DNA from: Eukaryota sp. TZLM1-RC
Taxonomy: Eukaryota; Protista; Metamonada: BaSk clade
NCBI GenBank assembly: GCA_040285825.1
Contig: JAUPSS010000012.1
Coordinates: 186,001 to 250,000 of the forward strand
Reading direction: 5' to 3'
Length of the DNA stretch: 64,000 bases
The notes beneath the pieces are model-generated. The model was given only the letters and a program-made list of their open reading frames with translations. It did not search any database and was not told the origin of the DNA. The translations under genes and the position numbers were made by a program. Positions 26,663 to 51,575 of the stretch are shown piece by piece (positions within the stretch are counted from its first letter, which is position 1; each line of letters begins with the position of its first letter).

Positions 26663-26709
26663 GAAAATAACTTTATCAAAATAAGGAAAAATAACTTTAT
26701 CAAAATAAG
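26663..26709 (+). repeat. Short tandem duplication in 3' flank of giant gene
   Basis: aaaataactttatcaaaataag occurs twice in tandem. Confidence 0.8.
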
Positions 26710-26794: not shown

Positions 26795-29700
26795 TTACTT
26801 TCCTCTCGTCGAATTCCTCCCAACTCTTCTCCGTGGTGCTCTAATGCCAGCAAATGGAACTGGGGGTAACTGTCGTGGTAATATTCTGTTTTGAGATTGC
26901 TCCTCCTTGAGAGGATCCGAGCGATATGGACTAGTTACCAAATGAGGTTCAATGTTGGGTAATCTATCACTAGTTGCCAATCCAGAAGGTCTTGCCACTT
27001 GAACTGAGGACGAATCTATGGGTGGGTTGGTCTTGTCGGTAGCATTGGAAGACCTTATTGGAGAATCAAATACTCCAGGAAGAGTAGAATATCGTGAATA
27101 ATGATGATTTTTTGGTCCCAGACTACTTAATGCAGCTTTTGCTTTAACTTTGCTATGTGAAAGGCCTTGTTTAATTGAGCCAACTTGTTTACTTTCAGCT
27201 CTTTTGAATACATTCTGTAATTCATTTCGCGAAAAAGATGACGATACACAAGGAGAACTTGAATGGAGCGAGTTTGCTAAAGTATTGCTCGCTGGAGAAA
27301 ACACATCGTTGGGGCTGAGAGCAACTATCTGGCTTTGATTTGATTGAGAAGATTTAACTTGTGAAACACATGAAATGCTTTCATTAAATGTTGATGATCC
27401 AGGGGTTTTTGTTTTCTCACTATTTTTGGAATTATTTAAACGTGGAGAAGCTGTGGAATGAATCGGCGATGGTCGTTGCTGTAGTTTTGGCAATGCGTTT
27501 CTAATTGGTTTAGGAGTTGGCAAAGACAACGGTGAAGGTTCATTCACAACATTCGTAGAATCAGAATTAGTGTTTGGTTCAAATGGTTCTACTGGTTCAA
27601 CGTCACCAGGTATTTCTTTATTGCTCGTTAAGGGTAGTGACCTCATTCGATGATGTAATGGAATCTTCGAAAATGCAGCAATTGGAACAGTTTTGCTCCT
27701 CTGATGAGTTCCAGAAACATGGTGGCTTTCGGAGAGAGGAATCGAAGTTTTTGAAGAAGCCACTGGAGATGAGTATTTTACCAAATCTTTACGACGTTTT
27801 CGAACCACAAAAAGACCAATTATAACACACAAAACAAACAATACAACCACAGCAACAACAACCAGGAAAGCCCTTTTCTGGGCAGAAATTACTGGTGGAA
27901 CACAGAGTAGATGGGCTTCAGCTTCGGACTCGTGAACACCATTATCATCTGCAAAGGTAAAAACAAGACTGATTGATAATAATGATCTTATAGATACTTC
28001 TGGCAGAGTGATGTAGCCAATGATTACAGTGTCAGTTTGTCCATATGCAGTTTCAATGTTTTTGATAACCAAATTGTGGCAATCTGGTTCCAAATCACGC
28101 TGATTCTTGTGCACCAGCAAACTCTTTGTACAAATTAAACTTGTTTTGATTCCAACATCGTGTCTCTTCTGACGATGCTTTAGGTGAAAATAAACATTTT
28201 CCCCACTTTCAAAGGGTCCCATAGAGCTGTGTGCAATAATGGACTGATAAGGGTATTCAACATTTAGCTTTTGTGTAGATAACATCAAAGTAGTTGATGA
28301 TGATTCTGATAATAAATTAATAAACGTAGGTACAATTGATAAATCTACAAAGCCTGAATCATCAACAGCAAAAGTGGCATCAATGGGGAAACAGTTACTA
28401 ATGGGTCCATGGGTCTGAGTAATAACCATCTTGAACACAGAACCAACCTTTTCAACTTTGTGTTTACAATTAGAATCAGTAAAAGCAACATCAGTCAATT
28501 CTATTGGATCATCTTGCTTGAAATTAATCTCAGCAGAGTCCTGTTTCTCAAACGAAAACCAGTAATCTTGAAACAAAGGTCGTTCATCAACATTTTGAAC
28601 AAATGAACCACGGTGTTCATAACTAGCAAAGGCAATAAGAGAAGCTAATATTGGATGTTTCACATTCAACATCATTTCATCAGCCTTACCATCAAGAGAA
28701 AGCTCAATTAAAGCAACACTCAACGTAATATTGACGTGGAGAAAGGGAGTCGAAACAGTGGCAGAAGTTCCATCAATGAGACAAGCTGAAAAGTCGCCAA
28801 AAGTGAGATCAACTTCATACCCCACAAGCTCACATGAAGGCGAATACTGTCGCCAAATATTGGATGGACTGTATGGTAAATAATAGGTAGAATTTAAAGC
28901 AAAACCAAGACTTGAGTGGGGAGCTGAATAATGGAAATAATCGCGATCAACCTCATCCAGAAAGCCCCCTTCCTTGTTGGAGCAAGTACCAACAGTAATG
29001 GTATTGAGTGACACGTCTGCCACCTCAGCAAAATCAATGAGCCAAGTATGACCTTGGCGAACATAAGGAACATGTACATCAATGGTAATGGTGTTGCCAT
29101 TGTAAGGATTGATTGAACTTGTGAAACTCAAATCTGAAGGCCGTACATTCTGCACCAATTCACACTCAAGACACGAATCGTAATAGAAATATTCAAAGAA
29201 GCCATGTGACGAGACTCCATTACTAGCTGAGACACAAAACTTGTTATCCATTACCCACCCACAATTTGGATCAGTCACACAATCATGACATGAATGATGT
29301 TCAAAGCAAAAGAACTCGTCAGTAAAGAACCTACAATAAGAATAGGTACAGTACATTTCATCAAGCATCACTTTGCCACTACCAACAATAAAACCTTCGT
29401 AACCGAATGGTCCTGGAGAGACAAACGTAGATGTCGAGTTTTGCACATACAACAAAGAGTTTTCACTTTTCAGTTCTAGTTCATTCATAAATGAGTTATT
29501 GGCTACGTGTACAACACCGGCAATAACCTCAACTCTATTCACCGTGCTGTTTTCCAGCAAAAATAAACCTTGCTGATCACAATAATTCATCCAAAAATCA
29601 TCTCGAGGTTGTGTGTCACCAAAATCTTCTACAATTTGACACTGAATATCACAAACAACCGTTCCATCTAGATGCGAAGAGGAAAGTACATGTAATTGCC

Positions 29701-32700
29701 CACTGTAAATGTTGATAGACATTTTAACCCATGAATAGATTGCCACAACTGAATCCTCAATGATCATGTTACCAGAAAAACTTTCCATATTGGTGAAAAG
29801 AGCTGCGGTCGTGTTGATGAAATTAATAGAATTGATAGAGTCATTGCATGAAAACAATAAGGCCAAATTCTGAAGACCAGACATATACATTGTGAAATTA
29901 GAATGGCATAACTTGACAGAACCATGATTGAAGAACAACACGCTATCAAATAAAACATCACCATTAGACATCGAGATTAAACCATCATTACTGATAGGCC
30001 CGGCCATTCGCGACGACATTATCACAGGAGAGCCAGAAATGTTGAGTATAGCGTTAAAAAGTACTGATAATTTTGAATAAGAATCCATTGATAACCCAGA
30101 AGGTAACAATGTCATGTTCCCTTCGATAAGAAGATGGCATGAATCAACATTAAGTCCATTGGAGACCACACAACTTGATGCGTAAGTAACAGTGGTTACA
30201 TTGGTTGATGACACAGAACATTGATCGAAATGAGAATTCAACATCCGAACTTCACCCATCTCAAAGTGATAACTACTTTTAAAACAGAAAAGACTTTGAA
30301 TATTTGGAATAAAACTTAAAGTGATGTTCGAAGTATTAGAAATGAGTACCGCATCTGACAGATCAATGTTTGAAAGATACACATCAGAATAAGAAAACTT
30401 AATACCAGTGCTTTGGAGGCTAGAATCAGTGGCAAAACTGTTCAACAACTCAGCTACAGGCATTAGATATAAATTGTGTAGGGTAACAATGGCGTGATTA
30501 AACGCTATTTGGCCGTGTAGCTCAACAGAGCAATTGGTAGCCGTAATAATTCCTTCCAAAACACTAATACCTGAACCTACCATGAGAGTCGATGTAAATG
30601 ACAGTTCGAGTGGTTGGTTGAAAGAAACAGTTGAGTTTTTCAATAAAAGCGAACCATCTATGAAAAATGGAATATGAGATACTGTTTGGGTAGACGAAAT
30701 CGAAAGAGTAGAAGATTTTGTAAAGAGAACTGATGAGGAAAATTCAAAACTTACAAAATTTCCAGAATTCCAAACAGCATGACCCTCAATAATAAGCTTG
30801 TGGTTTTCCAAATTTAAATCTTCATTACCATCAAATAAACCTTCTCCTTTAATTATAGTGGATGAATGGGTAGTTTTAGAGGTAAGCAATCCACTGATCC
30901 AGTGATAAAAATCATTTATAACTAGTTCAGTATCACCTGTTCTTGTTCCTCCATAGTGGTTGAATGTGGCAATATAAGAGTCCCCAAAGCATGAAAAATC
31001 AAATGTTGAATCTTGAAGTAAATTTAGAGAGGAAAAGTGACCATTACATTGACTTAATAATTCAAATTGACAGGAATTGTGTAAATAAACTTCACTTCCC
31101 CAAGTAATTAATCCTGCATTTTCAGAAAGTTTAAACAGAGAATTGTCGTAAAAATTAATTAAAGAATTGGATAAATAAACTTCAGAATTACCATCAATTT
31201 GGATAAAACTTTCATTATAAAGATTAATTGACTCAATTGAAGTGATATTGGTAAAATCTGTTATACCTACTGAACCACCAAATAAATTGAGAGTTGGTAT
31301 TGACGAAACCTTTGAATTATCATTAAAGTCAACCAAACCATCAAATACATCAACAAATAAAGAATCAACTTGAACATTTTCTTTAAATTCAACATTACCA
31401 TTAATAACTTTTACCATCAACCTAGAAACAAAAGCTTCACCTTGGAAAACAGCAGAACCAAATGAATCAATAATAATATTTTCAGCAACATCAAGATTTC
31501 CTGCTACAATTAATTGAGAGTTTGAATTATTTAATAATAAAAGAGAATAGCTTTCCAATGACCCACTTTCTCGAACATTTAGGATGTTATTTAGGTTTAA
31601 TTTCCCAGAATTTTCCAGTAAAAAATTGCCATTTACAATATCAAACTCTTGATTAAGATCCAAAGTACCATTTCCTATTACAAAATTACCATTATTGACA
31701 ACTTTTGCATCAATAAAGAGTAGAGATTCACAGATTTTTTCAACTTTACCATAATTACTTACAAGTGAATTAGAATCAGAATCTCCGGTAATAATTCCAC
31801 TTGAATTCACGTCAATAGTAAATAAACCATGGTCTGAAACATTAAATTCTCCATTAGAATTCAGTACAAAATTTCCAGAATTCCAAACAGCATGACCCTC
31901 AATAATAAGCTTGTGGTTTTCCAAATTTAAATCTTTATTACCATCAAATAAACCTTCTCCTTTAATTATAGTGGATGAATGGGTAGTTTTAGAGGTAAGC
32001 AATCCACTATTCCAATGATAAAAATCATTTATAACTAGCTCAGTATCACCTGTTCTTGTTCCTCCATAGTGGTTGAATGTGGCAATATAAAAGTCCCCAA
32101 AGCATGAATAATCAAGTGTTGAATCTTGAAGTAAATTTAGAGAGGAAAAGTGACCATTACATTGACTTAATAATTCAAATTTACAAGAATTGTGTAAATA
32201 AACTTCACTTCCCAAAGTAATTAATACTGCATTTTCAGAAACTTTAAACAGAGAATTGTCGTAAAAAATAATTAAACAATTGGATAAATAAACTTCAGAA
32301 TTACCTTCAATTTGGATAAAACTTTCATTATGAAGATTAATTGACTCAATTGAAGTGACATTGGCAAAATCTGTTATACCTACTGAACCACCAAATAAAT
32401 TGAGAGTTGGTATTGATGTAACCTTTGAATTACCATTAAATCCAACCAAACCATCAAATAAATCAACAAATAAAGAATCAACTTGAACATTTTCTTTAAA
32501 TTCAACATTACCATTAATAACTTTTACCATCAACTTAGAAACAAAAGCTTCACCTTGGAAAACAGCAGAACCAAATGAATCAATAATAATATTTTCAGCA
32601 ACATCAAGATTTCCTGCTACAATTAATTGAGAGTTTGAATTATTTAATAATAAAAGAGAATAACTTTCTAATGACCCACTTTCTCGAACATTTAGGATGT

Positions 32701-35700
32701 TAATTAGGTTTAATTTCCCAGGATTTTCTAGTAAAAGATTACCAGTCACTATATCAAACTCTTGATTCAGATCCAAAGTACCATTTCTTATTACAAAATT
32801 ACCATTATTGACAACTTTTGCATCGATAGAGAGTGGAGATTCACAGATTTTTTCAACTTTACCATAATTACTTACAAATGAATTAGAATCCGAAACTCCA
32901 GTAATAACTCCACTTGAATCCAAGTTAATAGTAAGTAAACCTTGGTCTGAAACATTAAATTCTCCATTAGAATTCAGTACAAAATTTCCAGAATTCCAAA
33001 CAGCATGACCCTCAATAATAAGCTTGTGGTTTTCCAAATTTAAATCTTTATTACCATCAAATATACCTTCTCCTTTAATTATAGTGGATGAATGGGTAGT
33101 TTTAGAGGTAAGCAATCCACTATTCCAATGATAAAAATCATTTATAACTAGCTCAGTATCACCTGTTCTTGTTCCTCCATAGTGGTTGAATGTGGCAATA
33201 TAAAAGTCCCCAAAGCATGAATAATCAAGTGTTGAATCTTGAAGTAAATTTAGAGAGGAAAAGTGACCATTACATTGACTTAATAATTCAAATTTACAAG
33301 AATTGTGTAAATAAACTTCACTTCCCCAAGTAATTAATCCTGCATTTTCAGAAAGTTTAAACAGAGAATTGTCGTAAAAATTAATTAAAGAATTGGATAA
33401 ATAAACTTCAGAATTACCATCAATTTGGATAAAACTTTCATTATAAAGATTAATTGACTCAATTGAAGTGATATTGGTAAAATCTGTTATACCTACTGAA
33501 CCACCAAATAAATTGAGAGTTGGTATTGACGAAACCTTTGAATTATCATTAAAGTCAACCAAACCATCAAATACATCAACAAATAAAGAATCAACTTGAA
33601 CATTTTCTTTAAATTCAACATTACCATTAATAACTTTTACCATCAACTTAGAAACAAAAGCTTCACCTTGGAAAACAGCAGAACCAAATGAATCAATAAT
33701 AATATTTTCAGCAACAACAAGATTTCCTGCTACAATTAATTGAGAGTTTGAATTATTTAATAATAAAAGAGAATAACTTTCTAATGACCCACTTTCTCGA
33801 ACATTTAGGATGTTATTTAGGTTTAATTTTCCAGGATTTTCTAGTAAAAGACTACCATTTACTATATCAAACTCTTGATTAAGATCCAAAGTACCATTTC
33901 TTATTACAAAATTACCATTATTGACAACTTTTGCATCGATAGAGAGTGGAGATTCACAGATTTTTTCAACTTTACCATAATTACTTACAAGTGAATTAGA
34001 ATCCGAATCTCCAGTAATAATTCCACTTGAATCCAAGTTAATAGTAAGTAAACCTTGGTCTGAAACATTAAATTCAGTAGAAAATTAAAGAATTCCAGAA
34101 TTCCAAACAGCATGACCCTCAATAATAAGCTTGTGGTTTTCCAAATTTAAATCTTTATTACCATCAAATAAACCTTCTCCTTTGATTATAGTGGATGAAT
34201 GGGTAGATTTAGAGGTAAGCAATCCACTATTCCAATGATAAAAATCATTTATAACTAGCTCAGTATCACCTGTTCTTGTTCCTCCATAGTGGTTGAATGT
34301 GGCAATATAAAAGTCACCAAAGCATGAATAATCAAATGTTGAATCTTGAAGTAAATTTAGAGAGGAAAAGTGACCATTACATTGACTTAATAATTCAAAT
34401 TCACAAGAATTGTGTAAATAAACTTCACTTCCCAAAGTAATTAATACTGCATTTTCAGAAACTTTAAACAGAGAATTGTCGTAAAAATTAATTAAAGAAT
34501 TGGATAAATAAACTTCAGAATTACCTTCAATTTGGATAAAACTTTCATTATGAAGATTAATTAACTCAATTGAAGTGATATTGGTAAAATCTGTTATACT
34601 TGCTGAACCACCAAATAAATTGAGAGTTGGTATTGACGAAACCTTTGAATTATCATTAAATTCAACCAAACCATCAAATACATCAACAAATAAAGAATCC
34701 ACTTGAACATTTTCTTTAAATTCAACATTACCATTAATAACTTTTACCATCAACTTAGAAACAAAAGCTTCACCTTGGAAAACAGCAGAACCAAATGAAT
34801 CAATAATAATATTTTCAGCAACATCAAGATTTCCTGCTACAATTAATTGAGAGTTTGAATTATTTAATAATAAAAGAGAATAGCTTTCCAATGACCCACT
34901 TTCTCGAACATTTAGGATGTTATTTAGGTTTAATTTCCCAGAATTTTCCAGTAAAAAATTGCCATTTACAATATCAAACTCTTGATTAAGATCCAAAGTA
35001 CCATTTCCTATTACAAAATTACCATTATTGACAACTTTTGCATCAATAAAGAGTAGAGATTCACAGATTTTTTCAACTTTACCATAATTACTTACAAGTG
35101 AATTAGAATCAGAATCTCCGGTAATAATTCCACTTGAATTCACGTCAATAGTAAATAAACCATGGTCTGAAACATTAAATTCTCCATTAGAATTCAGTAC
35201 AAAATTTCCAGAATTCCAAACAGCATGACCCTCAATAATAAGCTTGTGGTTTTCCAAATTTAAATCTTTATTACCATCAAATAAACCTTCTCCTTTAATT
35301 ATAGTGGATGAATGGGTAGTTTTAGAAATAAGCAAACCACTATTCCAATGATAAAAATCATTTATAACTAGCTCAGTATCACCTGTTCTTGTTCCTCCAT
35401 AGTGGTTGAATGTGGCAATATAAAAGTCACCAAAGCATGAATAATCAAGTGTTGAATCTTGAAGTAAATTTAGAGAGGAAAAGTGACCATTACATTGACT
35501 TAATAATTCAAATTTACAAGAATTGTGTAAATAAACTTCACTTCCCAAAGTAATTAATACTGCATTTTCAGAAACTTTAAACAGAGAATTGTCGTAAAAA
35601 TTAATTAAAGAATTGGATAAATAAACTTCAGAATTACCATCAATTTGGATAAAACTTTCATTATAAAGATTAATTGACTCAATTGAAGAGATATTGGTAA

Positions 35701-38700
35701 AATCTGTTATACCTACTGAACCACCAAATAAATTGAGAGTTGGTATTAATGAAACCTTTGAATTACCATTAAATTCAACCAAACCATCAACCAAATCAAC
35801 AAATAAAGAATCAACTTGAACATTTTCTTTAAATTCAACATTTCCATTAATGACTTTTACCTTCAACTTAGAAACAAAAGCTTCACCTTGGAAAACAGCA
35901 GAACCAAATGAATCAATAATAATATTTTCAGCAACATCAAGATATCCTGCTACAATTAACTGAGAATTTGAATTATTTAATAATAAAAGAGAATAGCTTT
36001 CTAATGACCCACTTTCTCGAACATTTAGGATGTTATTTAGGTTTAATTTTCCAGGATTTTCTAGTAAAAGATTACCATTCACTATATCAAACTCTTGATT
36101 AAGATCCAAAGTACCATTTCTTATAACAAAATTACCATTATTGACAACTTTGGCATCAATAGAGAGTAGAGCTTCACAGATTTTTTCAACTTTACCATAA
36201 TTACTTACAAATGAATTAGAATCCGAATCTCCAGTAATAATTCCATTTGAATCCAAGTTAATAGTAAATAAACCTTGGTCTGAAACATTAAATTCTCCAT
36301 TAGAATTCAGTACAAAATTTCCAGAATTCCAAACAGCATGACCCTCAATTAAAAGTTTGTGGTTTTCCATAATTAAATCTTCACTACCATCAAATAAACC
36401 TTCTCCTTTAATTATAGTGGATGAATGGGTAGTTTTAGAAATAAGCAAACCACTATTCCAATGATAAAAATCATTTATAACTAGCTCAGTATCACCTGTT
36501 CTTGTTCCTCCATAGTGGTTGAATGTGGCAATATAAAAGTCACCAAAGCATGAATAATCAAGTGTTGAATCTTGAAGTAAATTTAGAGAGGAAAAGTGAC
36601 CATTACATTGACTTAATAATTCAAATTTACAAGAATTGTGTAAATAAACTTCACTTCCCAAGGTAATTAATACTGCATTTTCAGAAACTTTAAACAGAGA
36701 ATTGTCGTAAAAATTAATTAAAGAATTGGATAAATAAACTTCAGAATTACCATCAATTTGGATAAAACTTTCATTATAAAGATTAATTGACTCAATTGAA
36801 GAGATATTGGTAAAATCTGTTATACCTACTGAACCACCAAATAAATTGAGAGTTGGTATTAATGAAACCTTTGAATTACCATTAAATTCAACCAAACCAT
36901 CAACCAAATCAACAAATAAAGAATCAACTTGAACATTTTCTTTAAATTCAACATTACCATTAATGACTTTTACCATCAACTTAGAAACAAAAGCTTCACC
37001 TTGGAAAACAGCAGAACCAAATGAATCAATAATAATATTTTCAGCAACATCAAGATATCCTGCTACAATTAACTGAGAATTTGAATTATTTAATAATAAA
37101 AGAGAATAGCTTTCTAATGACCCACTTTCTCGAACATTTAGGATGTTATTTAGGTTTAATTTTCCAGGATTTTCTAGTAAAAGATTACCATTCACTATAT
37201 CAAACTCTTGATTAAGATCCAAAGTACCATTTCTTATAACAAAATTACCATTATTGACAACTTTTGCATCAATAGAGAGTAGAGATTCACAGTTTTTTTC
37301 AACTTTACCATAATTACTTACAAGTGAATTAGAATCCGAATCTCCGGTAATAATTCCACTTGAATTCAAGTCAATAGTAAATAAACCTTGGTCTGAAACA
37401 TTAAATTCTCCATTAGAATTCAGTACAAAATTTCCAGAATTCCAAACAGTATGACCCTCAATTAAAAGTTTGTGGTTTTCCAAATTTAAATCTTCATTAC
37501 CATCAAATAAACCTTCTCCTTTGATTATAGTGGATGAATGGGTAGTTTTAGAGGTAAGCAACCCACTATTCCAATGATAAAAATCATTTATAACTAGCTC
37601 AGTATCACCTGTTCTTGTTCCTCCATAGTGGTTGAATGTGGCAATATAAAAAGTCACCAAAGCATGAATAATCAAGTGTTGAATCTTGAAGTAAATCTAG
37701 AGAGGAAAAGTGACCATTACATTGACTTAATAATTCAAATTTACAAGAATTGTGTAAATAAACTTCACTTCCCAAAGTAATTAATACTGCATTTTCAGAA
37801 ACTTTAAACAGAGAATTGTCGTAAAAATTAATTAAAGAATTGGATAAATAAACTTCAGAATTACCATCAATTTGGATAAAACTTTCATTATAAAGATTAA
37901 TTGACTCAATTGAAGTGACATTGGCAAAATCTGTTATACCTACTGAACCACCAAATAAATTGAGAGTTGGTATTGATGTAACCTTTGAATTACCATTAAA
38001 TTCAACCAAACCATCAAATACATCAACAAATAAAGAATCAACTTGAACATTTTCTTTAAATTCAACATTACCATTAATAACTTTTACCATCAACTTAGAA
38101 ACAAAAGCTTCACCTTGGAAAACAGCAGAACCAAATGAATCAATAATAAAATTTTCAGCAACATCAAGATATCCTGCTACAATTAATTGAGAGTTTGAAT
38201 TATTTAATAATAAAAGAGAATAACTTTCTAATGACCCACTTTCTCGAACATTTAGGAGATTATTTAGGTTTAATTTTCCAGGATTTTCTAGTAAAAGATT
38301 ACCATTTACTATATCAAACTCTTGATTAAGATCCAAAGTACCATTTCTTATTACAAAATTACCATTATTGACAACTTTGGCATCAATAGAGAGTAGAGAT
38401 TCACAGTTTTTTTCAACTTTACCATAATTACTTACAAGTGAATTAGAATCCGAATCTCCGGTAATAATTCCACTTGAATTCAAGTCAATAGTAAATAAAC
38501 CTTGGTCTGAAACATTAAATTCTCCATTAGAATTCAGTACAAAATTTCCAGAATTCCAAACAGTATGACCCTCAATTAAAAGTTTGTGGTTTTCCAAATT
38601 TAAATCTTCATTACCATCAAATAAACCTTCTCCTTTGATTATAGTGGATGAATGGGTAGTTTTAGAGGTAAGCAACCCACTATTCCAATGATAAAAATCA

Positions 38701-41700
38701 TTTATAACTAGCTCAGTATTACCTGTTCTTGTTCCTCCATGGTGGTTGAATGTGGCAATATAAAAGTCACCAAAGCATGAATAATCAAATGTTGAATCTT
38801 GAAGTAAATTTAGAGAGGAAAAGTGACCATTACATTGACTTAATAATTCAAATTGACAAGAATTGTGTAAATAAACTTCACTTCCCAAAGTAATTAATAC
38901 TGCATTTTCAGAAACTTTAAACAGAGAATTGTCGTAAAAATTAATTAAAGAATTGGATAAATAAACTTCAGAATTACCATCAATTTGGATAAAACTTTCA
39001 TTATGAAGATTAATTGACTCAATTGAAGAGATATTGGTAAAATCTGTTATACCTACTGAACCACCAAATAAATTGAGAGTTGGTATTAATGAAACCTTTG
39101 AATTACCATTAAATTCAACCAAACCATCAACCAAATCAACAAATAAAGAATCAACTTGAACATTTTCTTTAAATTCAACATTACCATTAATGACTTTTAC
39201 CTTCAACTTAGAAACAAAAGCTTCACCTTGGAAACAGCAGAACCAAATGAATCAATAATAATATTTTCAGCAACATCAAGATATCCTGCTACAATTAACT
39301 GAGAATTTGAATTATTTAATAATAAAAGAGAATAGCTTTCTAATGACCCACTTTCTCGAACATTTAGGATGTTATTTAGGTTTAATTTTCCAGGATTTTT
39401 CTAGTAAAAGATTACCATTCACTATATCAAACTCTTGATTAAGATCCAAAGTACCATTTCTTATAACAAAATTACCATTATTGACAACTTTGGCATCAAT
39501 AGAGAGTAGAGCTTCACAGATTTTTTCAACTTTACCATAATTACTTACAAATGAATTAGAATCCGAATCTCCAGTAATAATTCCATTTGAATCCAAGTTA
39601 ATAGTAAATAAACCTTGGTCTGAAACATTAAATTCTCCATTAGAATTCAGTACAAAATTTCCAGAATTCCAAACAGCATGACCCTCAATTAAAAGTTTGT
39701 GGTTTTCCATAATTAAATCTTCACTACCATCAAATAAACCTTCTCCTTTAATTATAGTGGATGAATGGGTAGTTTTAGAAATAAGCAAACCACTATTCCA
39801 ATGATAAAAATCATTTATAACTAGCTCAGTATCACCTGTTCTTGTTCCTCCATAGTGGTTGAATGTGGCAATATAAAAGTCACCAAAGCATGAATAATCA
39901 AGTGTTGAATCTTGAAGTAAATTTAGAGAGGAAAAGTGACCATTACATTGACTTAATAATTCAAATTTACAAGAATTGTGTAAATAAACTTCACTTCCCA
40001 AAGTAATTAATACTGCATTTTCAGAAACTTTAAACAGAGAATTGTCGTAAAAATTAATTAAAGAATTGGATAAATAAACTTCAGAATTACCATCAATTTG
40101 GATAAAACTTTCATTATAAAGATTAATTGACTCAATTGAAGAGATATTGGTAAAATCTGTTATACCTACTGAACCACCAAATAAATTGAGAGTTGGTATT
40201 AATGAAACCTTTGAATTACCATTAAATTCAACCAAACCATCAACCAAATCAACAAATAAAAGAATCAACTTGAACATTTTCTTTAAATTCAACATTACCA
40301 TTAATGACTTTTACCATCAACTTAGAAACAAAAGCTTCACCTTGGAAAACAGCAGAACCAAATGAATCAATAATAATATTTTCAGCAACATCAAGATATC
40401 CTGCTACAATTAACTGAGAATTTGAATTATTTAATAATAAAAGAGAATAGCTTTCTAATGACCCACTTTCTCGAACATTTAGGATGTTATTTAGGTTTAA
40501 TTTTCCAGGATTTTCTAGTAAAAGATTACCATTCACTATATCAAACTCTTGATTAAGATCCAAAGTACCATTTCTTATAACAAAATTACCATTATTGACA
40601 ACTTTTGCATCAATAGAGAGTAGAGATTCACAGATTTTTTCAACTTTACCATAATTACTTACAAGTGAATTAGAATCCGAATCTCCGGTAATAATTCCAC
40701 TTGAATTCAAGTCAATAGTAAATAAACCTTGGTCTGAAACATTAAATTCTCCATTAGAATTCAGTACAAAATTTCCAGAATTCCAAACAGTATGACCCTC
40801 AATTAAAAGTTTGTGGTTTTCCAAATTTAAATCTTCATTACCATCAAATAAACCTTCTCCTTTGATTATAGTGGATGAATGGGTAGTTTTAGAGGTAAGC
40901 AACCCACTATTCCAATGATAAAAATCATTTATAACTAGCTCAGTATCACCTGTTCTTGTTCCTCCATAGTGGTTGAATGTGGCAATATAAAAGTCACCAA
41001 AGCATGAATAATCAAGTGTTGAATCTTGAAGTAAATCTAGAGAGGAAAAGTGACCATTACATTGACTTAATAATTCAAATTTACAAGAATTGTGTAAATA
41101 AACTTCACTTCCCAAAGTAATTAATACTGCATTTTCAGAAACTTTAAACAGAGAATTGTCGTAAAAATTAATTAAAGAATTGGATAAATAAACTTCAGAA
41201 TTACCATCAATTTGGATAAAACTTTCATTATAAAGATTAATTGACTCAATTGAAGTGACATTGGCAAAATCTGTTATACCTACTGAACCACCAAATAAAT
41301 TGAGAGTTGGTATTGATGTAACCTTTGAATTACCATTAAATTCAACCAAACCATCAAATACATCAACAAATAAAGAATCAACTTGAACATTTTCTTTAAA
41401 TTCAACATTACCATTAATAACTTTTACCATCAACTTAGAAACAAAAGCTTCACCTTGGAAAACAGCAGAACCAAATGAATCAATAATAATATTTTCAGCA
41501 ACATCAAGATTTCCTGCTACAATTAACTGAGAATTTGAATTATTTAATAATAAAAGAGAATAACTTTCTAATGACCCACTTTCTCGAACATTTAGGATGT
41601 TGTTCAGGTATAATTTTCCAGGATTTTCAAGTAAAAGATTACCATTTACTATATCAAACTCTTGATTAAGATCCAAAGTACCATTTCTTATTACAAAATT

Positions 41701-44700
41701 ACCATTATTGACAACTTTTGCATCGATAGAGAGTGGAGATTCACAGATTTTTTCAACTTTACCATAATTACTTACAAGTGAATTAGAATCCGAATCTCCA
41801 GTAATAATTCCACTTGAATCCAAGTTAATAGTAAGTAAACCTTGGTCTGAAACATTAAATTCTCCATTAGAATTCAGTACAAAATTTCCAGAATTCCAAA
41901 CAGCATGACCCTCAATAATAAGCTTGTGGTTTTCCAAATTTAAATCTTCATTACCATCAAATAAACCTTCTCCTTTAATTATAGTGGATGAATGGGTAGT
42001 TTTAGAAATAAGCAATCCACTATTCCAATGATAAAAATCATTTATAACTAGCTCAGTATCACCTGTTCTTGTTCCTCCATGGTGGTTGAATGTGGCAATA
42101 TAAAAGTCACCAAAGCATGAATAATCAAGTGTTGAATCTTGAAGTAAATCTAGAGAGGAAAAGTGACCATTACATTGACTTAATAATTCAAATTTACAAG
42201 AATTGTGTAAATAAACTTCACTTCCCAAAGTAATTAATACTGCATTTTCAGAAACTTTAAACAGAGAATTGTCGTAAAAATTAATTAAAGAATTGGATAA
42301 ATAAACTTCAGAATTACCATCAATTTGGATAAAACTTTCATTATAAAGATTAATTGACTCAATTGAAGTGACATTGGCAAAATCTGTTATACCTACTGAA
42401 CCACCAAATAAATTGAGAGTTGGTATCGATGTAACCTTTGAATTACCATTAAATTCAACCAAACCATCAAATACATCAACAAATAAAGAATCAACTTGAA
42501 CATTTTCTTTAAATTCAACATTACCATTAATAACTTTTACCATCAACTTAGAAACAAAAGCTTCACCTTGGAAAACAGCAGAACCAAATGAATCAATAAT
42601 AATATTTTCAGCAACATCAAGATTTCCTGCTACAATTAATTGAGAATTTGAATTATTTAATAATAAAAGAGAATAACTTTCTAATGACCCACTTTCTCGA
42701 ACATTTAGGATGTTATTTAGGTTTAATTTCCCAGGATTTTCTAGTAAAAGATTACCATTTACTATATCAAACTCTTGATTAAGATCCAAAGTACCATTTC
42801 TTATTACAAAATTACCATTATTGACAACTTTTGCATCGATCGAGAGTAGAGATTCACAAATTTTTTCAACTTTACCATAATTACTTACAAATGAATTAGA
42901 ATCCGAATCTCCAGTAATAATTCCACTTGAATCCAAGTTAATAGTAAGTAAACCTTGGTCTGAAACATTAAATTCTCCATTAGAATTCAGTACAAAATTT
43001 CCAGAATTCCAAACAGCATGACCCTCAATAATAAGCTTGTGGTTTTCCAAATTTAAATCCTCATTACCATCAAATAAACCTTCTCCTTTAATTATAGTGG
43101 ATGAATGGGTAGTTTTAGAGGTAAACAATCCACTATTCCAATGATAAAAATCATTTATAACTAGCTCAGTATCACCTGTTCTTGTTCCTCCATGGTGGTT
43201 GAATGTGGCAATATAAAAGTCCCCAAAGCATGAATAATCAAATGTTGAATCTTGAAGTAAATTTAGAGAGGAAAAGTGACCATTACATTGACTTACTAAT
43301 TCAAATTTACCAGAATTGTGTAAATAAACTTCACTTCCCAAAGTAATTAATACTGCATTTTCAGAAACTTTAAACAGAGAATTGTCGTAAAAATTAATTA
43401 AAGAATTGGATAAATAAACTTCAGAATTACCATCAATTTGGATAAAACTTTCATTATAAAGATTAATTGACTCAATTGAAGTGATATTGGCAAAATCTGT
43501 TATACCTACTGAACCACCAAATAAATTGAGAGTTGGTATTAATGAAACCTTTGAATTACCATTAAATTCAACCAAACCATCAAATAAATCAACAAATAAA
43601 AGATCAACTTGAACACTTTCTTTAAATTCAACATTACCATTAATAACTTTTACCATCAACTTAGAAACAAAAGCTTCACCTTGGAAAACAGCAGAACCAA
43701 ATGAATCAATAATAATATTTTCAGCAACAACAAGATTTCCTGCTACAATTAATTGAGAGTTTGAATTATTTAATAATAAAAGAGAATAACTTTCTAATGA
43801 CCCACTTTCTCGAACATTTAGGATGTTGTTCAGGTTTAATTTTCCAGGATTTTCTAGTAAAAGATTACCATTTACAATATCAAACTCTTGATTAAGATCC
43901 GCAGTACCATTTCTTATTACAAAATTACCATTATTGACAACTTTTGCATCAATAGAGAGTAGAGATTCACAAATTTTTTCAACTTTACCATAATTACTTA
44001 CAAGTGAATTAGAATCCGAATCTCCAGTAATAATTCCACTTGAATTCAAGTCAATAGTAAATAAACCTTGGTCTGAAACATTAAATTCTCCATTAGAATT
44101 CAGTACAAAATTTCCAGAATTCCAAACAGCATGGCCCTCAATAATAAGTTTGTGGTTTTCCATAATTAAATCTTCATTACCATCAAATAAACCTTCTCCT
44201 TTGATCATAGTGGATGAATGGGTAGTTTTAGATGTAAGCAAACCACTATTCCACTGATAAAAGTCATTTATAACTAGTTCAGTATCACCTGTTCTTGTTC
44301 CTCCATGGTGGTTGAATGTGGCAATATAAAAGTCACCAAAGCATGAATAATCAAATGTTGAATCTTGAAGTAAATTTAGAGAGGAAAAGTGACCATTACA
44401 ATGACTTAATAATTCAAATTGACAAGAATTGTGTAAATAAACTTCACTTCCCAAAGTAATTAATACTGCATTTTCAGAAACTTTAAACAGAGAATTGTCG
44501 TAAAAATTAATTAAAGAATTGGATAAATAAACTTCAGAATTACCATCAATTTGGACAAAACTTTCATTATAAAGATTAATTGAATCAATTGAAGTGATAT
44601 TGGCAAAATCTGTTATACCTACTGAACCACCAAATAAATTGAGAGTTGGTATTAATGAAACCATTGAATTACCATTAAATTCAACCAAACCATCAAATAA

Positions 44701-47700
44701 ATCAACAAATAAAGAATCAACTTGAACATTTTCTTTAAATTCAACATTACCATTAATAACTTTTACCTTCAACTTAGAAACAAAAGCTTCACCTTGGAAA
44801 ACAGCAGAACCAAATGAATCAATAATAATATTTTCAGCAACATCAAGATATCCTGCTACAATTAATTGAGAATTTGAATTATTTAATAATAAAAGAGAAT
44901 AGCTTTCCAATGACCCACTTTCTCGAACATTTAGGATGTTATTTAGGTTTAATTTTCCAGGATTTTCTAGTAAAAGATTACCAGTCACAATATCAAACTC
45001 TTGATTAAGATCCAAAGTACCATTTCTTATTACAAAATTACCATTATTGACAACTTTGGCATCAATAGAGAGTAGAGATTCACAGATTTTTTCAACTTTA
45101 CCATAATTACTTACAAGTGAATTAGAATCCGAATCTCCAGTAATAATTCCACTTGAATCCAAGTTAATAGTAAGTAAACCTTGGTCTGAAACATTAAATT
45201 CTCCATTAGAATTCAGTACAAAATTTCCAGAATTCCAAGCAGCATGACCCTCAATAATAAGTTTGTGGTTTTCCATAATTAAATCTTCATTACCATCAAA
45301 TAAACCTTCTCCTTTGATCATAGTGGATGAATGGGTAGTTTTAGATGTAAGCAAACCACTATTCCACTGATAAAAGTCATTTATAACTAGTTCAGTATCA
45401 CCTGTTCTTGTTCCTCCATGGTGGTTGAATGTGGCAATATAAAAGTCACCAAAGCATGAATAATCAAATGTTGAATCTTGAAGTAAATTTAGAGAGGAAA
45501 AGTGACCATTACAATGACTTAATAATTCAAATTGACAAGAATTGTGTAAATAAACTTCACTTCCCAAAGTAATTAATACTGCATTTTCAGAAACTTTAAA
45601 CAGAGAATTGTCGTAAAAATTAATTAAAGAATTGGATAAATAAACTTCAGAATTACCATCAATTTGGACAAAACTTTCATTATAAAGATTAATTGAATCA
45701 ATTGAAGTGATATTGGCAAAATCTGTTATACCTACTGAACCACCAAATAAATTGAGAGTTGGTATTAATGAAACCTTTGAATTACCATTAAATTCAACCA
45801 AACCATCAAATAAATCAACAAATAAAGAATCAACTTGAACATTTTCTTTAAATTCAACATTACCATTAATAACTTTTACCTTCAACTTAGAAACAAAAGC
45901 TTCACCTTGGAAAACAGCAGAACCAAATGAATCAATAATAATATTTTCAGCAACATCAAGATATCCTGCTACAATTAATTGAGAATTTGAATTATTTAAT
46001 AATAAAAGAGAATAGCTTTCCAATGACCCACTTTCTCGAACATTTAGGATGTTATTTAGGTTTAATTTTCCAGGATTTTCTAGTAAAAGATTACCAGTCA
46101 CAATATCAAACTCTTGATTAAGATCCAAAGTACCATTTCTTATTACAAAATTACCATTATTGACAACTTTGGCATCAATAGAGAGTAGAGATTCACAGAT
46201 TTTTTCAACTTTACCATAATTACTTACAAGTGAATTAGAATCCGAATCTCCAGTAATAATTCCACTTGAATCCAAGTTAATAGTAAGTAAACCTTGGTCT
46301 GAAACATTAAATTCTCCATTAGAATTCAGTACAAAATTTCCAGAATTCCAAGCAGCATGACCCTCAATTAAAAGTTTGTGGTTTTCCAAATTTAAATCTT
46401 CATTACCATCAAATAAACCTTCTCCTTTAATCATAGTGGATGAATGGGTAGTTTTAGAGGTAAGCAACCCACTATTCCAATGATAAAAATCATTTATAAC
46501 TAGCTCAGTATCACCTGTTCTTGTTCCTCCATAGTGGTTGAATGTGGCAATATAAAAGTCACCAAAGCATGAATAATCAAGTGTTGAATCTTGAAGTAAA
46601 TCTAGAGAGGAAAAGTGACCATTACATTGACTTAATAATTCAAATTTACAAGAATTGTGTAAATAAACTTCACTTCCCAAAGTAATTAATACTGCATTTT
46701 CAGAAACTTTAAACAGAGAATTGTCGTAAAAATTAATTAAAGAATTGGATAAATAAACTTCAGAATTACCATTAATTTGGACAAAACTTTCATTATAAAG
46801 ATTAATTGACTCAATTGAAGTGATATTGGCAAAATCTGTTATACCTACTGAACCACCAAATAAATTGAGAGTTGGTATTAATGAAATCTTTGAATTACCA
46901 TTAAATTCAACCAAACCATCAAATAAATCAACAAATAAAGAATCAACTTGAACATTTTCTTTAAATTCAACATTACCATTGATAACCTTTACCTTCAACT
47001 TAGAAACAAAAGCTTCACCTTGGAAAACAGCAGAACCAAATGAATCAATAATAATATTTTCAGCAACATCAAGATTTCCTGCTACAATTAACTGAGAATT
47101 TGAATTATTTAATAATAAAAGAGAATAACTTTCTAATGACCCACTTTCTCGAACATTTAGGATGTTGTTCAGGTTTAATTTTCCAGGATTTTCTAGTAAA
47201 AGATTACCAGTCACAATATCAAACTCTTGATTAAGATCCACAGTACCATTTCTTATTACAAAATTACCATTATTGACAACTTTGGCATCAATAGAGAGTA
47301 GAGATTCACAGATTTTTTCAACTTTACCATAATTACTTACAAATGAATTAGAATCCGAATCTCCAGTAATAACTCCACTTGAATCCAAGTTAATAGTAAG
47401 TAAACCTTGGTCTGAAACATTAAATTCTCCATTAGAATTCAGTACAAAATTTCCAGAATTCCAAACAGCATGACCCTCAATAATAAGCTTGTGGTTTTCC
47501 AAATTTAAATCTTTATTACCATCAAATATACCTTCTCCTTTAATTATAGTGGATGAATGGGTAGTTTTAGAGGTAAGCAATCCACTATTCCAATGATAAA
47601 AATCATTTATAACTAGCTCAGTATCACCTGTTCTTGTTCCTCCATAGTGGTTGAATGTGGCAATATAAAAGTCACCAAAGCATGAATAATCAAATGTTGA

Positions 47701-50700
47701 ATCTTGAAGTAAATTTAGAGAGGAAAAGTGACCATTACATTGACTTAATAATTCAAATTTACAAGAATTGTGTAAATAAACTTCAATTCCCAAAGTAATT
47801 AATACTGCATTTTCAGAAACTTTAAACAGAGAATTGTCGTAAAAATTAATTAAAGAATTGGATAAATAAACTTCAGAATTACCTTCAATTTGGATAAAAC
47901 TTTCATTATGAAGATTAATTGACTCAATTGAAGTGATATTGGTAAAATCTGTTATACTTACTGAACCACCAAATAAATTGAGAGTTGGTATTGACGAAAT
48001 CTTTGAATTATCATTAAATTCAACCAAACCATCAAATACATCAACAAATAAAGAATCAACTTGAACATTTTCTTTAAATTCAACATTACCATTAATAACT
48101 TTTACCTTCAACTTAGAAACAAAAGCTTCACCTTGGAAAACAGCAGAACCAAATGAATCAATAATAATACTTTCAGCAACATCAAGATTTCCTGCTACAA
48201 TTAATTGAGAGTTTGAATTATTTAATAATAAAAGAGAATAACTTTCCAATGACCCACTTTCTCGAACATTTAGGATGTTATTTAGGTTTAATTTTCCAGG
48301 ATTTTCTAGTGAAAGATTACCATTTACTATATCAAACTCTTGATTAAGATCCAAAGTACCATTTCTTATTACAAAATTACCATTATTGACAACTTTTGCA
48401 TCGATAGAGAGTGGAGATTCACAGATTTTTTCAACTTTACCATAATTACTTACAAGTGAATTAGAATCCGAATCTCCAGTAATAATTCCATTTGAATCCA
48501 AGTTAATAGTAAGTAAACCTTGGTCTGGAACATTAAATTCTCCATTAGAATTCAGTACAAAATTTCCAGAATTCCAAACAGCATGACCCTCAATAATAAG
48601 CTTGTGGTTTTCCAAATTTAAATCTTTATTACCATCAAATAAACCTTCTCCTTTAATTATAGTGGATGAATGGGTAGTTTTAGAAATAAGCAACCCACTA
48701 TTCCAATGATAAAAATCACTTATAACCAACTCAGTATCACCTGTTCTTGTTCCTCCATGGTGGTTGAAATACCGCACCAACAACCCACCATGACTGGAAA
48801 CATCAAGAATACTTTCGCAGGCAATTGAAGCATTAGAAAAGCTGTAATTCCCATCAACACTTCTTAAGGATACCTCTGACACGGGTTGAATTACTAGACT
48901 TATGTCATCACCATTTAAACTATCAGCAGAAATTACAAACTTTGAGTGATTGCTGTGCCAATAATTTCCATTCAATTCAACACTAAAGGCATCAATAAAT
49001 TTCAAAGAAGAGCCAAAGTCCAGATTAAAAACTGAATCAGAGATTGAAACATGGTGGCAGTCAAGAAAGAAAATATTGGAATTTTGACTCAAAATTGTCA
49101 TATTTTCTAAAATGAAATCACAATTGGAAACTGTAAAGTTTGAAAAATTGGTTAAATTCAAAGCCGAATTTGAAACTGAAATTTTGGTTAGCGGTGAACA
49201 CGTCACCAGCACCTGAACTTCTGAACTGACGGTTTCAAAAATCACACTCAACTCTTCAAATGAAACCGACTCAGTTAATTCATATGTTCCAGAGGAAAAC
49301 AAAATTTTCCCTCCATGAGAGAGTCTGGCCACCGCTGTTTTGAATGAGCTGCATGAACCTGCTTGATTGGAACCACAACAAGACTGTTGGCTGGCGTCAA
49401 ATGAAACGTACACCGTGTCTAGGAAAACAATTGGGGAAATTTCAATAATAATTGAAAATTCTGAGTAGACCAAGTCAACAATTTCACAACCTTCTGGCAA
49501 CTCAAATGAAAAATCTCCATTTAATTCGGAAAATTTAAAAAGAGTAAAGTTTGAACCTGGTTCAATCTGAGAAAAGTCCCATTCCAAGTCGATAGAACCT
49601 TCGATACTCAATGTTCCTTCAACAATAATAGTGGGTTTAGAGACAAGATCAATAACAGTAGTTGATGTAGAATGTAATGTAAGGTCTCCATTAACAAACA
49701 AAGTTCCATTAGGTTGAAAAGTGCCATAAACTTTTAAATCACCCCCAATTACACCATTTCCAACCAAAAAAAAGTCAGATGCTATTGATAATACTTCCAC
49801 ATTCAAATTACCAGAATTCAGGGTAATATTACTAAGGAAGCTCGACTGCGTTGTTGGCGAAACATCCATTGTACCAGACACTGCGAGAGACTCATGAAAG
49901 TTGCATAGACTATTATTGGCCGTGACCTTACCAGATACATCGAGAGGGCAATAAACGTCAAAATCATGGGCAAGAATACTAAGCGTACCATGAATCTGCC
50001 CAAAAGAATAACTATCAACTCTTGAGATAGAAACAGTCTCAGAAGTAATAGGTGAATGCTCAGGCTCCGCAAAAACGCCCGAAAAAATGATGGAAAAATC
50101 AAACCCCAAGGTGATGAAGGACCCTGATCTATTTGGAATTAGAACAGGTGATCGATAAATCTCGTGAGTGTGATGTGGCAACCCCAATTGCGAATGCTGG
50201 TTGTCTCCCCAAGCAGCAATACTTCCATTATTGAAGAGAATCATTGAATTATACCCAGATGTCTTGACAGAAACGATGGGTGAAGTCCCAGTGATCCTGA
50301 CAGTGACTGGGTTGTGTCGATTGTGTATATTTCCATCACCAATTTGACCCTAAAATCAGGAAAAAACCAAACCAAACCTTGTTACCCAAACCATATGACT
50401 TTAATGTACCACTGTTGAGAAGGACCAATGTATGGTGAATTCCACAAGAAAATTGGTCTACATCTGACAATCCATTCTCTGTTGGACGACGGCGTGAATG
50501 AGGGTCTGCCAAGCCTAATTGTCTAAGATAAACATGAAAGAAAGAACAAACCCGTAATCATTAGGACCACATACCCATAATTTGTTGGCTGAATCAAGCA
50601 GATGGGAAAACTGAAACCCACAATCTGTGATTAGATCGAAATTAACAACAAACCCAAAGTTTCAATTGATGGTATACCTTCCAAAAGAACTGGGGTAGCA

Positions 50701-51575
50701 CGGTAATCTACGTGAGGACCTAGACCAATGGCTCCTTCCATTCCAAAAACATCAGATCCTAAAGAAAAGTCACCATTTGCACAGATACTGGAGGCGTTAT
50801 GAAGAGGAATTATGGAAGAATGAGACTGTGGGTTTAATGAATTAATTCCAAGCTGTCCAAAACTAAGGTTAAATTATAAAGAAAAACAAAACTTATTGCG
50901 TCCCCAGCTGGCGAGAGAGCCATCTGAAAGCAGTGCTAAAACGTGGGAATCACCAGAAGTGACAGCGGAAACAGGAGAAGGAAACCCAATGGAGAGTGGG
51001 GTCATGAAAGAATCATTTGTAGAACCTAAACCAAGCTGCCCTTCTTCGTTACTTCCCCAGGTGATAATGGAGCCGAAAGCAGGCGACAGGAAAAGTGTTG
51101 CAGAGGGGTGCAGGGTGAAGGTGGCAGCATTCTGAAAATGAAGAATTCCACGTATCCATACGCTATTGCCAGCAACAATATGGAGAGACACATGATCAAA
51201 GTTGATCGAGACAGTACTGTTAATATAAATAGCCGATGCACTGATGGAACAAGCTGATGGAGCTGCACAAACAAAGGATCCTCCAAATAAAGTAAGTGTG
51301 GTTGAAACTTGGAGAGATGCACCATCCCCCACAACAAACGTATTATCCCCCTGTGATACCAGTGATAAAACTGACAGTTCCTCATCAAGACTGATTTGAA
51401 TGGAATATTCTAGCTTCGGAAACACAACATCCGAGTGTTCTCCAGGAAGAACATTATCATTCCAACAAGAAGGATCAGTCCAACTACTTGTGCTTGAACA
51501 AATAAATGTCGAAACGTTGGAATTTACCAAGAAGAAGCAAAAAGTGACAAAAAACACAAGACGTGAGCTTAGCAT
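26795..51575 (-). CDS. Giant type I membrane surface protein (~8,220 aa): signal peptide, G8-like, RCC1 repeats, 16 x 371-aa repeats, PSI-like, TM, S/P-rich tail
   Basis: Six ORFs on the track join via four GT-AG introns (50863-50892, 50625-50653, 50523-50551, 50350-50377), four single-base homopolymer indels (~40260, ~39400, ~39232, ~37650) and one garbled in-frame patch (~34075-34095). The TM segment FLVVVAVVVLFVLCVIIGLFVV is followed by RKRRK. Confidence 0.88.
30755..48770 (-). repeat. Coding tandem array, 1113-bp unit, ~16.2 copies
   Basis: The marker cctgttcttgttcctcca occurs 17 times, from 30936 to 48740, at 1113-bp spacing (1114 twice and 1107 once, at the indels). Confidence 0.97.
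50350..50892 (-). other. Four spliceosomal micro-introns (30, 29, 29, 28 nt)
   Basis: All are GTTT..YAG. Removing them restores the frame and the RCC1 motifs SWGRNNFGQLG, LDCGFQFS, CGPNDYGQLG and YGLGNKGQIG. Confidence 0.92.

Follow-up and report, generated by a model that had tools for sequence, protein, structure and literature searches.

A probable giant surface protein of Skoliomonas litria with an RCC1-type propeller and a predicted beta-helix rod

The minus strand between positions 26795 and 51575 of a 64,000-nt stretch of DNA from the soda-lake flagellate Skoliomonas litria TZLM1-RC ("Eukaryota sp. TZLM1-RC", assembly GCA_040285825.1) contains six open reading frames (ORFs) of at least 150 amino acids (aa). 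The whole stretch is called the window here, and all coordinates are positions in it. In GenBank, the same region is covered by two adjacent unnamed hypothetical proteins, KAL0205255.1 (P0001, 3726 aa) and KAL0205254.1 (P0002, 4334 aa). Do these pieces represent several genes or a single one, and what would such a gene encode? The initial annotation had joined the six ORFs into one gene for a giant surface receptor or adhesin. According to the sequence and the structural models described below, the gene is probably intact or nearly so, and would encode a type I membrane protein of ~8,200 residues with a role in adhesion or recognition.

Continuity of the gene

The minus strand from 51575 to 26798 can be read as one gene of ~8,210 codons, once 146 nt of intron sequence and the net excess of 2 nt from the indels are subtracted. 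A stop-to-stop frame map reveals nine open stretches, each of which touches or overlaps the next; the three longest span 3366, 2429 and 1203 codons. At a GC content of 29% (28.5-29%), a stop codon is expected by chance every ~12 codons, so stretches of this length represent coding sequence and chance is excluded. Each switch of frame corresponds to a single homopolymer indel between adjacent or overlapping frames. Besides five lesions, not one further stop or frameshift is present in the ~8,200 codons. The earlier claim of one gene interrupted by five local lesions is therefore borne out, as an alignment of the 16 repeat units of the gene identifies exactly five departures from the frame. From the N- to the C-terminus, the encoded parts are ordered as a signal peptide, a cap, an RCC1 propeller, 16.2 units of 371 aa, a PSI-like module, a transmembrane helix and a Ser/Pro-rich tail. 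One gene, rather than six ORFs or the two annotated genes, is supported by the sequence. All searches were run with the separate exons and ORF pieces, the joined N-terminus being represented by the public proteins P0001 and P0002.

The two GenBank models partition this gene at one of its lesions. KAL0205255.1 maps exactly to 51575..40252 and KAL0205254.1 maps from ~40223 to 26798, and the split coincides exactly with the first frameshift, a +1 T in a T run. Taken literally, the models describe two adjacent genes, one for a secreted RCC1/beta-helix protein and one for an independent, membrane-anchored beta-helix protein. Both come from an RNA-seq-trained annotation pipeline, which speaks for them; even so, a pair of separate genes is very improbable. 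The second model begins within a beta-helix unit and without a signal peptide, at an ATG in another frame (40223-40221), and is joined to the following sequence by an 11-nt GT..AG "intron" (40220-40210), which is almost certainly an annotation artefact. To bypass the lesions, it requires three more "introns" of 189, 103 and 120 nt that delete conserved repeat sequence, whereas the introns of the first model measure 28-30 nt; these also look like artefacts of annotation. In addition, the paralogs keep the order of RCC1 part, array and C-terminal part across their own split models.

The public model places five GT-AG introns of 30, 30, 29, 29 and 28 nt (Table 1). Micro-introns had been recognized initially, but four were counted instead of five. 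The additional one, intron 1, is in frame and stop-free and thus invisible from the ORFs; its sole source is the annotators' RNA-seq-trained pipeline. Removal of introns 2-5 restores RCC1 motifs. A 53-nt version of intron 3 was considered and dropped, because the public model has a GT-AG intron of 29 nt here whose removal leads to the RCC1-like DCGFQFSHLL. The translation start is the first ATG after the upstream in-frame stop, and is shared with the GenBank model P0001.

The repeat array and its frame breaks

A blastn search with one unit delimits the array at 48756..30752, with 16 full units of 1113 nt (371 aa) and a partial unit of 201 nt, in agreement with the 16.2 repeats that were first counted. 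The units are 95.7-100% identical to unit 3 at the nucleotide level. Tandem Repeats Finder missed the array because its period limit (500 nt) lies below the 1113 nt of one unit. Among distinct variants, the inter-unit ratio of non-synonymous to synonymous differences (pN/pS) is ~0.59, which is weak purifying selection under concerted evolution. Several pairs of units (u03/u04, u06/u07, u08/u11, u09/u12 and u13/u16) are 98.3-99.8% identical, some of them three units apart, and the mean identity by lag is flat (96.4-97.2%). As far as can be read from the sequence, these pairs indicate recent one-unit and three-unit duplications or conversions, with no regular higher-order period.

The lesions were called by alignment of the 16 units. 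Four of them are frameshifts (37652..40261), all of +/-1 nt in A/T runs of 3-5 and all located in units 8-10. These units belong to the most redundant part of the array, in which u08 and u11 are 99.8% identical and u09 and u12 99.6%. Three of the four frameshifts fall within stretches of 525-631 nt whose sequence is, apart from the indel, the same as in another unit (control median of 286 nt); in these stretches, a short read has no unique position. The assembly was made from Nanopore R9.4 data, with Illumina reads used for correction (PMC11316075).

Two paralogous loci on other contigs of the same assembly, L001 and L002, contain arrays with a period of 1119 nt (L001:4436-14190) and 1137 nt (L002:6555-13621). 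Together they show ~29 indel sites, all of which are homopolymers lengthened by 1-2 nt, 28 of them in A/T runs. The indels are confined to the inner units, and none is present in the outer ones. The public models break inside these arrays as well, L001 being split into models of 6029, 157 and 2793 aa and L002 into models of 2329, 334 and 2403 aa. Three genes decaying independently would not give such a homopolymer-only, inner-unit pattern, while a bias of basecalling or polishing would. The four frameshifts are thus very probably assembly errors, as judged from their sequence context. Nanopore errors would have split the gene at places inside the array where short reads were unable to polish them. 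The pattern suggests that the annotation of long tandem arrays is affected throughout the genome in these Nanopore assemblies, systematic homopolymer errors breaking up precisely the largest surface proteins. The two GenBank "hypothetical proteins" should accordingly be merged into one protein of ~8,200 residues; at least two paralogous loci are likewise split.

The fifth lesion, in unit 14, combines several changes (Table 1) with a net loss of 6 nt. A micro-intron removing its in-frame TAA was sought, and no GT..AG of suitable size was found. This lesion may be either real or an assembly fault. The 2429 codons downstream of the TAA are open, so that the lesion, if real, would be recent.

Were all the lesions real, the locus would be a pseudogene of recent origin, or else an allele truncated so as to give only a secreted, unanchored product that ends at the first frameshift (3,726 aa) or at the TAA of unit 14. 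The assembled sequence does contain five frame-breaking changes after Illumina correction; the change in unit 14, with its deletion between GAATT repeats, resembles replication slippage and not a basecalling error; and a pN/pS of 0.59 suggests relaxed constraint. This explanation is nevertheless unlikely. Besides the restriction of all four frameshifts to +/-1 nt in A/T runs, three of them beyond the reach of short reads, and the same inner-unit pattern in two paralogs, more than 4,000 codons downstream are still open at 29% GC, and the net change of -6 nt in unit 14 keeps the frame. An intact or nearly intact gene, broken in the assembly, is the reading adopted in the following.

Predicted structure of the protein

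The putative signal peptide has a hydrophobic core preceded by R5. The region behind it was modelled with AlphaFold2 (AF2) over residues 21-900, using a 30-row alignment. The cap is modelled as strands, with a predicted local distance difference test score (pLDDT) of ~54-77 per 10-residue block. It contains the motif W..W..VLP..DVVF, which the initial annotation had described as G8-like. The motif is present, but its assignment to G8 is not sustained, as PF10162 gives no match at E<=0.1 on the N-terminal exon. A weak Pfam match to Amnionless (E 0.0022, 17.3 bits) lies under the cut-off of 30.4 bits. The cap with its motif, as well as the RCC1 part, recurs in P0010 of strain GEM-RC1 and in the first gene model of the paralog L002.

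The propeller is recognized by sequence and by shape. In exons 1-2, the score of Pfam RCC1 (PF00415) is 46.8 bits (cut-off 21.7) and that of PF13540 is 39.1 bits (cut-off 22), with more matches in two later exons. The AF2 model of the propeller has a pLDDT of 85-98, except for two blocks of 55-63. Foldseek aligns it to UVR8, RPGR and the RCC1-like domains (RLDs) of HERC proteins with E values of 6e-20 to 1e-15, a root-mean-square deviation (rmsd) of 2.2-2.5 and 24-27% identity, the template modelling (TM) score by target being 0.67-0.70. Concerning the number of blades, six motifs are recognizable, ~298 of the ~370 target columns are aligned, and the poorly predicted blocks correspond to model residues ~231-250. 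A true RCC1-type propeller is predicted for the N-terminus, six of its repeats bearing the motif, and the initial count of about six RCC1 repeats agrees with this.

Downstream of a linker, the strand-rich pre-repeat region is modelled as strands with a pLDDT of mostly 55-82 and one block of 40. It matches no Pfam family at its cut-off, and relatives of it are found in strain GEM-RC1 (P0010, P0012, P0013 and P0024).

The repeat unit is composed of 13% Leu, 12% Asn, 12% Ser and 9% Gly. Its hydrophobic periodicity is ~7, its best self-similarity lag is 21 residues, and it contains ~5 N-glycosylation sequons. No match to the unit exists in Pfam, the PDB sequences or the named Atlas clusters. A PDB sequence search with the pre-repeat region and one unit yielded 0 matches, and Pfam Beta_helix (PF13229)/PbH1 matches no piece of the gene. 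The Atlas features for the unit provide generic beta-solenoid leads below the level of recognition.

Two consecutive units were modelled by AF2 with a 13-row alignment of Skoliomonas relatives. The resulting model is all-beta, with a mean pLDDT of 94.8 and a predicted TM score (pTM) of 0.80, and the pLDDT remains 94-97 across the unit boundary. In an ESM-Atlas shape search, residues 1-742 align to FHA-repeat and PATR autotransporter models with TM scores of 0.70-0.74. The best PDB chains in Foldseek are EspC, EtpA and Ag43, all of them weak matches (E >=6e-3). Applied to this Foldseek list, VIA-align returns Z scores of 19.2 for TibA (rmsd 3.9 over 261 residues), 18.0 for pertactin and ~17 for Ag43, and Z scores of 11-12 for EtpA and Fap2 over the whole model. 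With high confidence, the prediction is that the units stack as one continuous right-handed beta-helix, and not as beads on a string; the beta-solenoid stalk that was proposed from composition is supported at the level of the AF2 fold.

Each unit comprises ~17-18 coils of ~21 residues. With a rise of ~4.8 A per coil, which is taken from generic beta-helix geometry and not from measured coordinates, one unit would measure ~8.5 nm and the array ~140 nm. A rod of this length would carry the propeller, as a binding head, to a great distance from the plasma membrane. On the basis of the models, the product is most likely a membrane-anchored rod longer than 100 nm that carries a propeller-shaped binding domain.

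At the membrane end, a region rich in N and S precedes the Cys-rich module. Pfam PSI (PF01437) matches this module with E 0.0012-0.0018 and 19.0-19.6 bits, below the cut-off of 23.1. Its residues C467, C472, C481, C487, C490, C496-G-W, C505, C526 and C529 are invariant in three paralogs. The PSI-like CxxCx5CGW module of the initial annotation is thus present with a conserved Cys/CGW framework, its score for the PSI family being sub-threshold. For the membrane-proximal region, no match was obtained in Pfam, the PDB sequences or the Atlas features, and PDB sequence searches with the C-terminal ectodomain and with a three-paralog profile gave 0 matches. The C-terminal ectodomain is common to P0004 and P0022.

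The putative transmembrane helix is the sole Kyte-Doolittle peak above 2.2 in either public model. The helix and the Ser/Pro-rich tail behind it had both been noticed from the start, the tail being 335 aa long. It contains one YxxPhi motif (YSTL) and no NPx[YF], and has no Pfam match. A type I topology is supported by the sequence, and would place the propeller outside the cell.

Some observations weigh against an intact, anchored protein of this architecture. The AF2 models of the cap, the linker and the pre-repeat region are of low to moderate confidence, and the inter-unit pN/pS indicates weak constraint only. Moreover, the lesion in unit 14 is not a homopolymer error, and if it is real, the protein ends before its membrane anchor.

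Table 1. Features of the giant gene in the window, in the order of transcription
Feature	Coordinates	Strand	Description
Start and signal peptide	51516..51575 (ATG 51575-51573)	-	aa ~1-20, MLSSRLVFFVTFCFFLVNSN
N-terminal cap	51069..51515	-	aa 21-159, strand-rich, contains intron 1; motif W..W..VLP..DVVF at ~51420-51482
Intron 1	51132..51161	-	30 nt, GTATGG..TTTCAG, in frame, stop-free; missing from protein P0001
RCC1-like propeller	50125..51068	-	aa ~160-435, six GxxxxGQLG-type motifs at aa 164, 215, 258, 307, 356, 408
Intron 2	50863..50892	-	30 nt, GTTTTG..CTTAG; holds in-frame stop 50874-50876; removal restores WGRNNFGQLG
Intron 3	50625..50653	-	29 nt, GTTTGT..CACAG; removal yields ...IETLDCGFQFSHLL, RCC1-like (..DCGFQFSHLL..)
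Intron 4	50523..50551	-	29 nt, GTTTGT..CTTAG; removal restores PNDYGQLG
Intron 5	50350..50377	-	28 nt, GTTTGG..TTTAG; removal restores GLGNKGQIGDG
Linker	49900..50124	-	aa ~436-510; model residues 415-490 with pLDDT <50
Strand-rich pre-repeat region	48757..49899	-	aa ~511-891, including CCGSNQAGSC..GGKILFSSGTY
Repeat array	30752..48756	-	blastn units, identity matrix, AF2 beta-helix
Frameshift 1	~40261	-	+1 T, T3->T4, unit 8
Frameshift 2	~39400	-	+1 A, A4->A5, unit 9
Frameshift 3	~39234	-	-1 T, T4->T3, unit 9
Frameshift 4	~37652	-	+1 T, T4->T5, unit 10
Unit-14 complex lesion	34075..34095	-	+7 nt, -13 nt between GAATT direct repeats, G>C; in-frame TAA 34085-34087
Post-array N/S-rich strand-type region	29351..30751	-	~467 aa; partly conserved in paralogs P0004 and P0022
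PSI-like Cys-rich module	29162..29350	-	C..C....C..C..C.....CGW......C...C..C
Membrane-proximal region	27872..29161	-	~430 aa; conserved VPY.R.G.T..ID, CSNK, APHS and SNIW.Q blocks
Putative transmembrane helix	27803..27871	-	AFLVVVAVVVLFVLCVIIGLFVV, then RKRRK
Predicted cytoplasmic tail and stop	26795..27802 (stop 26795-26797)	-	335 aa, Ser 17.7%, Pro 10.7%

Relatives, precedents and a possible role

An exhaustive HMMER search with 441 pre-array residues and unit 1 against 1.84 billion representatives returned 18 matches at E<=0.001, headed by KAL0205255.1 and KAL0205254.1. All six matches at E<=1e-30, and all matches that bear a name, come from Skoliomonas strains (TZLM1-RC, GEM-RC1 and TZLM3-RCL); the remaining few are weak, nameless metagenomic matches (E 9e-6 to 5e-4). 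Tandem units of 357-377 aa, mostly 372-377, in the same register (query positions 1-370) are present in P0004, P0022, P0003, P0005, P0019 and P0006. Two of these relatives are S. litria paralogs and the rest belong to GEM-RC1 and TZLM3-RCL. Less regular, related units occur in P0008. As judged from these similarities, the gene is a member of a small, undescribed family of giant Skoliomonas proteins whose units measure ~371-377 aa.

The ends of the family members differ. The first model of L002 (L002:1227-8216) is a single, intronless exon of 2329 aa and contains two cap-plus-RCC1 modules (aa ~30-420 and 1106-1383), so that the number of propeller heads varies within the family. P0019 (GEM-RC1, 6277 aa) and P0008 (TZLM3-RCL, 5703 aa) combine the beta-helix unit with long termini that share nothing detectable with the cap, RCC1 and PSI-like parts. 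P0019 also matches Pfam Beta_helix with 28 bits, against a cut-off of 25.9.

In its predicted beta-helix rod, length, repetitive build and presumed surface role, the protein resembles bacterial adhesins of the autotransporter type (TibA, Ag43, pertactin, EspC and Fap2) and of the two-partner secretion (TPS) type (FHA, EtpA and HMW1). It differs from them in being eukaryotic, with spliceosomal introns and a C-terminal transmembrane anchor instead of a beta-barrel or TPS system, and in its 371-residue super-units, RCC1 head and PSI-like module. No Fil_haemagg, PATR, Pertactin, AIDA, Autotransporter or TPS match was found in Pfam.

The nearest eukaryotic precedent for its mode of action may be provided, by analogy, by the Pmp-like proteins of trichomonads. 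These metamonad proteins possess a bacterial-type beta-helical ectodomain, one transmembrane helix and a cytoplasmic tail, and their over-expression raises adhesion (PMC6701047). The Pmp proteins tested are of ~67-68 kDa, compared with ~900 kDa here, and have no RCC1 head, while the Skoliomonas tail is without NPx[YF]. The Pmp motifs are not enriched in the unit: GGA[ILV] is absent (0 per unit), and the 5 FxxN per unit are at the level of chance, shuffled sequences having 2.9 +/- 1.6. Pfam Pmp gives no match either.

For the head, other relatives come into view. The best structural matches, RCC1, UVR8, RPGR and HERC1/2, are nuclear or cytosolic and seven-bladed, whereas the Skoliomonas propeller follows a signal peptide and has six motif repeats. 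The initial annotation had considered RCC1 propellers to be mostly intracellular, which overlooked hundreds of giant extracellular RCC1 proteins in bacteria. A search with the head yielded 656 giant candidates of extracellular type at E<=0.001, bacterial wherever the source is named. These secreted or surface proteins of 2,000-6,400 aa from Verrucomicrobiota, Planctomycetota and others ("alpha-tubulin suppressor-like RCC1 family protein") carry propellers 25-36% identical to the head. Their propellers are usually arranged in tandem, together with cadherin-like, FN3, Big or LamG domains instead of a beta-helix rod, and they have no eukaryotic transmembrane helix or tail. The head is slightly closer in identity to these bacterial propellers than to solved eukaryotic RLDs (24-27%). 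A horizontal transfer of the head from bacteria was considered on this account, but no claim on its origin is made.

In concept, the protein is also similar to the sexual agglutinins of Chlamydomonas and other head-on-shaft adhesins of protists, in which a long rigid shaft at the surface bears a globular, distal recognition head. The shaft of the agglutinins is a hydroxyproline-rich, polyproline-type fibre, unlike a beta-helix, and a sequence relationship is not expected. An RCC1 head combined with a rod of beta-helix super-units, a PSI-like module and a transmembrane helix in a eukaryote was not found in a literature search. The combination of domains is new, whereas the class to which the protein would belong, the giant repetitive adhesin, is familiar and already well known.

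How could such a protein work? The signal peptide would route it into the secretory pathway. The first 435 residues would form the small strand-rich cap and the RCC1-type propeller, followed by a linker of ~75 residues. About 7,000 residues would fold as a right-handed beta-helix, of which ~6,000 would make up the sixteen near-identical 371-residue super-units in one rod. Between this rod and the transmembrane helix, the connection would be made by a Cys-knotted PSI-like module and a domain of ~430 residues, and the disordered, Ser/Pro-rich tail of 335 residues would lie in the cytoplasm and link the protein to the inside of the cell. The flanks of the beta-helix, with ~5 sequons per unit, may provide additional adhesive surface. 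By analogy and from the models, the protein most likely serves to adhere to, or to recognize, prey bacteria, a substratum or other cells. We infer here the length of the rod, its location at the surface, the binding of a ligand and the intactness of the gene in vivo. In the species description, cells of TZLM1-RC were seen to stick by their surface, which its authors took for an artefact.

An intact gene might also serve a mainly structural purpose. Its product would then contribute to a thick, glycosylated coat or spacer, protecting the cell under hypersaline, alkaline conditions or keeping particles at a distance, and the RCC1 part would act as a cap or as a lateral cross-linker. A coat would fit the mass of the protein, which is mostly a uniform rod with ~5 N-glycosylation sequons per unit, the homogenised rather than diversified units, a tail without a recognizable signalling domain, and the soda-lake habitat of the organism (PMC11603281). 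We consider this function improbable, because propellers at the distal tips of long rods are typical binding heads, and the rod itself finds its closest structural counterparts among adhesins. The presence of one or two RCC1 modules in several paralogs suggests, in addition, that the head is the diversifying part, and a coat protein would need to be abundant. Adhesion or recognition is accordingly retained as the preferred role.

If the protein exists as predicted, it would rank among the largest predicted proteins of metamonads. It would be a rare eukaryotic case of an autotransporter-like beta-helix rod on a transmembrane anchor with an RCC1 propeller at its tip, and a concrete candidate for how a free-living bacterivore contacts its prey or surfaces. 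Given the concerted evolution of the units, their copy number could tune the reach of the rod. More tentatively, and with some doubt on our side, Skoliomonas might have evolved its own class of transmembrane-anchored beta-helix rods longer than 150 nm, with homogenised super-units of ~371 aa whose copy number sets the reach, and with RCC1 as the lineage's general surface recognition module for prey, partners or foes. In that case, they would represent a receptor architecture without a described eukaryotic counterpart.

Finally, some features of base composition were observed at the locus. The array (30000-48000) has a GC content of 28.5-29%, compared with 39.5% in the N-terminal part and 35-38% in the C-terminal part of the gene; the neighbouring genes are richer in GC as well. 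The array also displays a strong negative GC skew on the plus strand. About 90 nt past the stop codon, at 26664-26709, a perfect 24-nt tandem repeat of 1.9 copies, AAAATAACTTTATCAAAATAAGGA, is located in the presumed 3' untranslated region or terminator.

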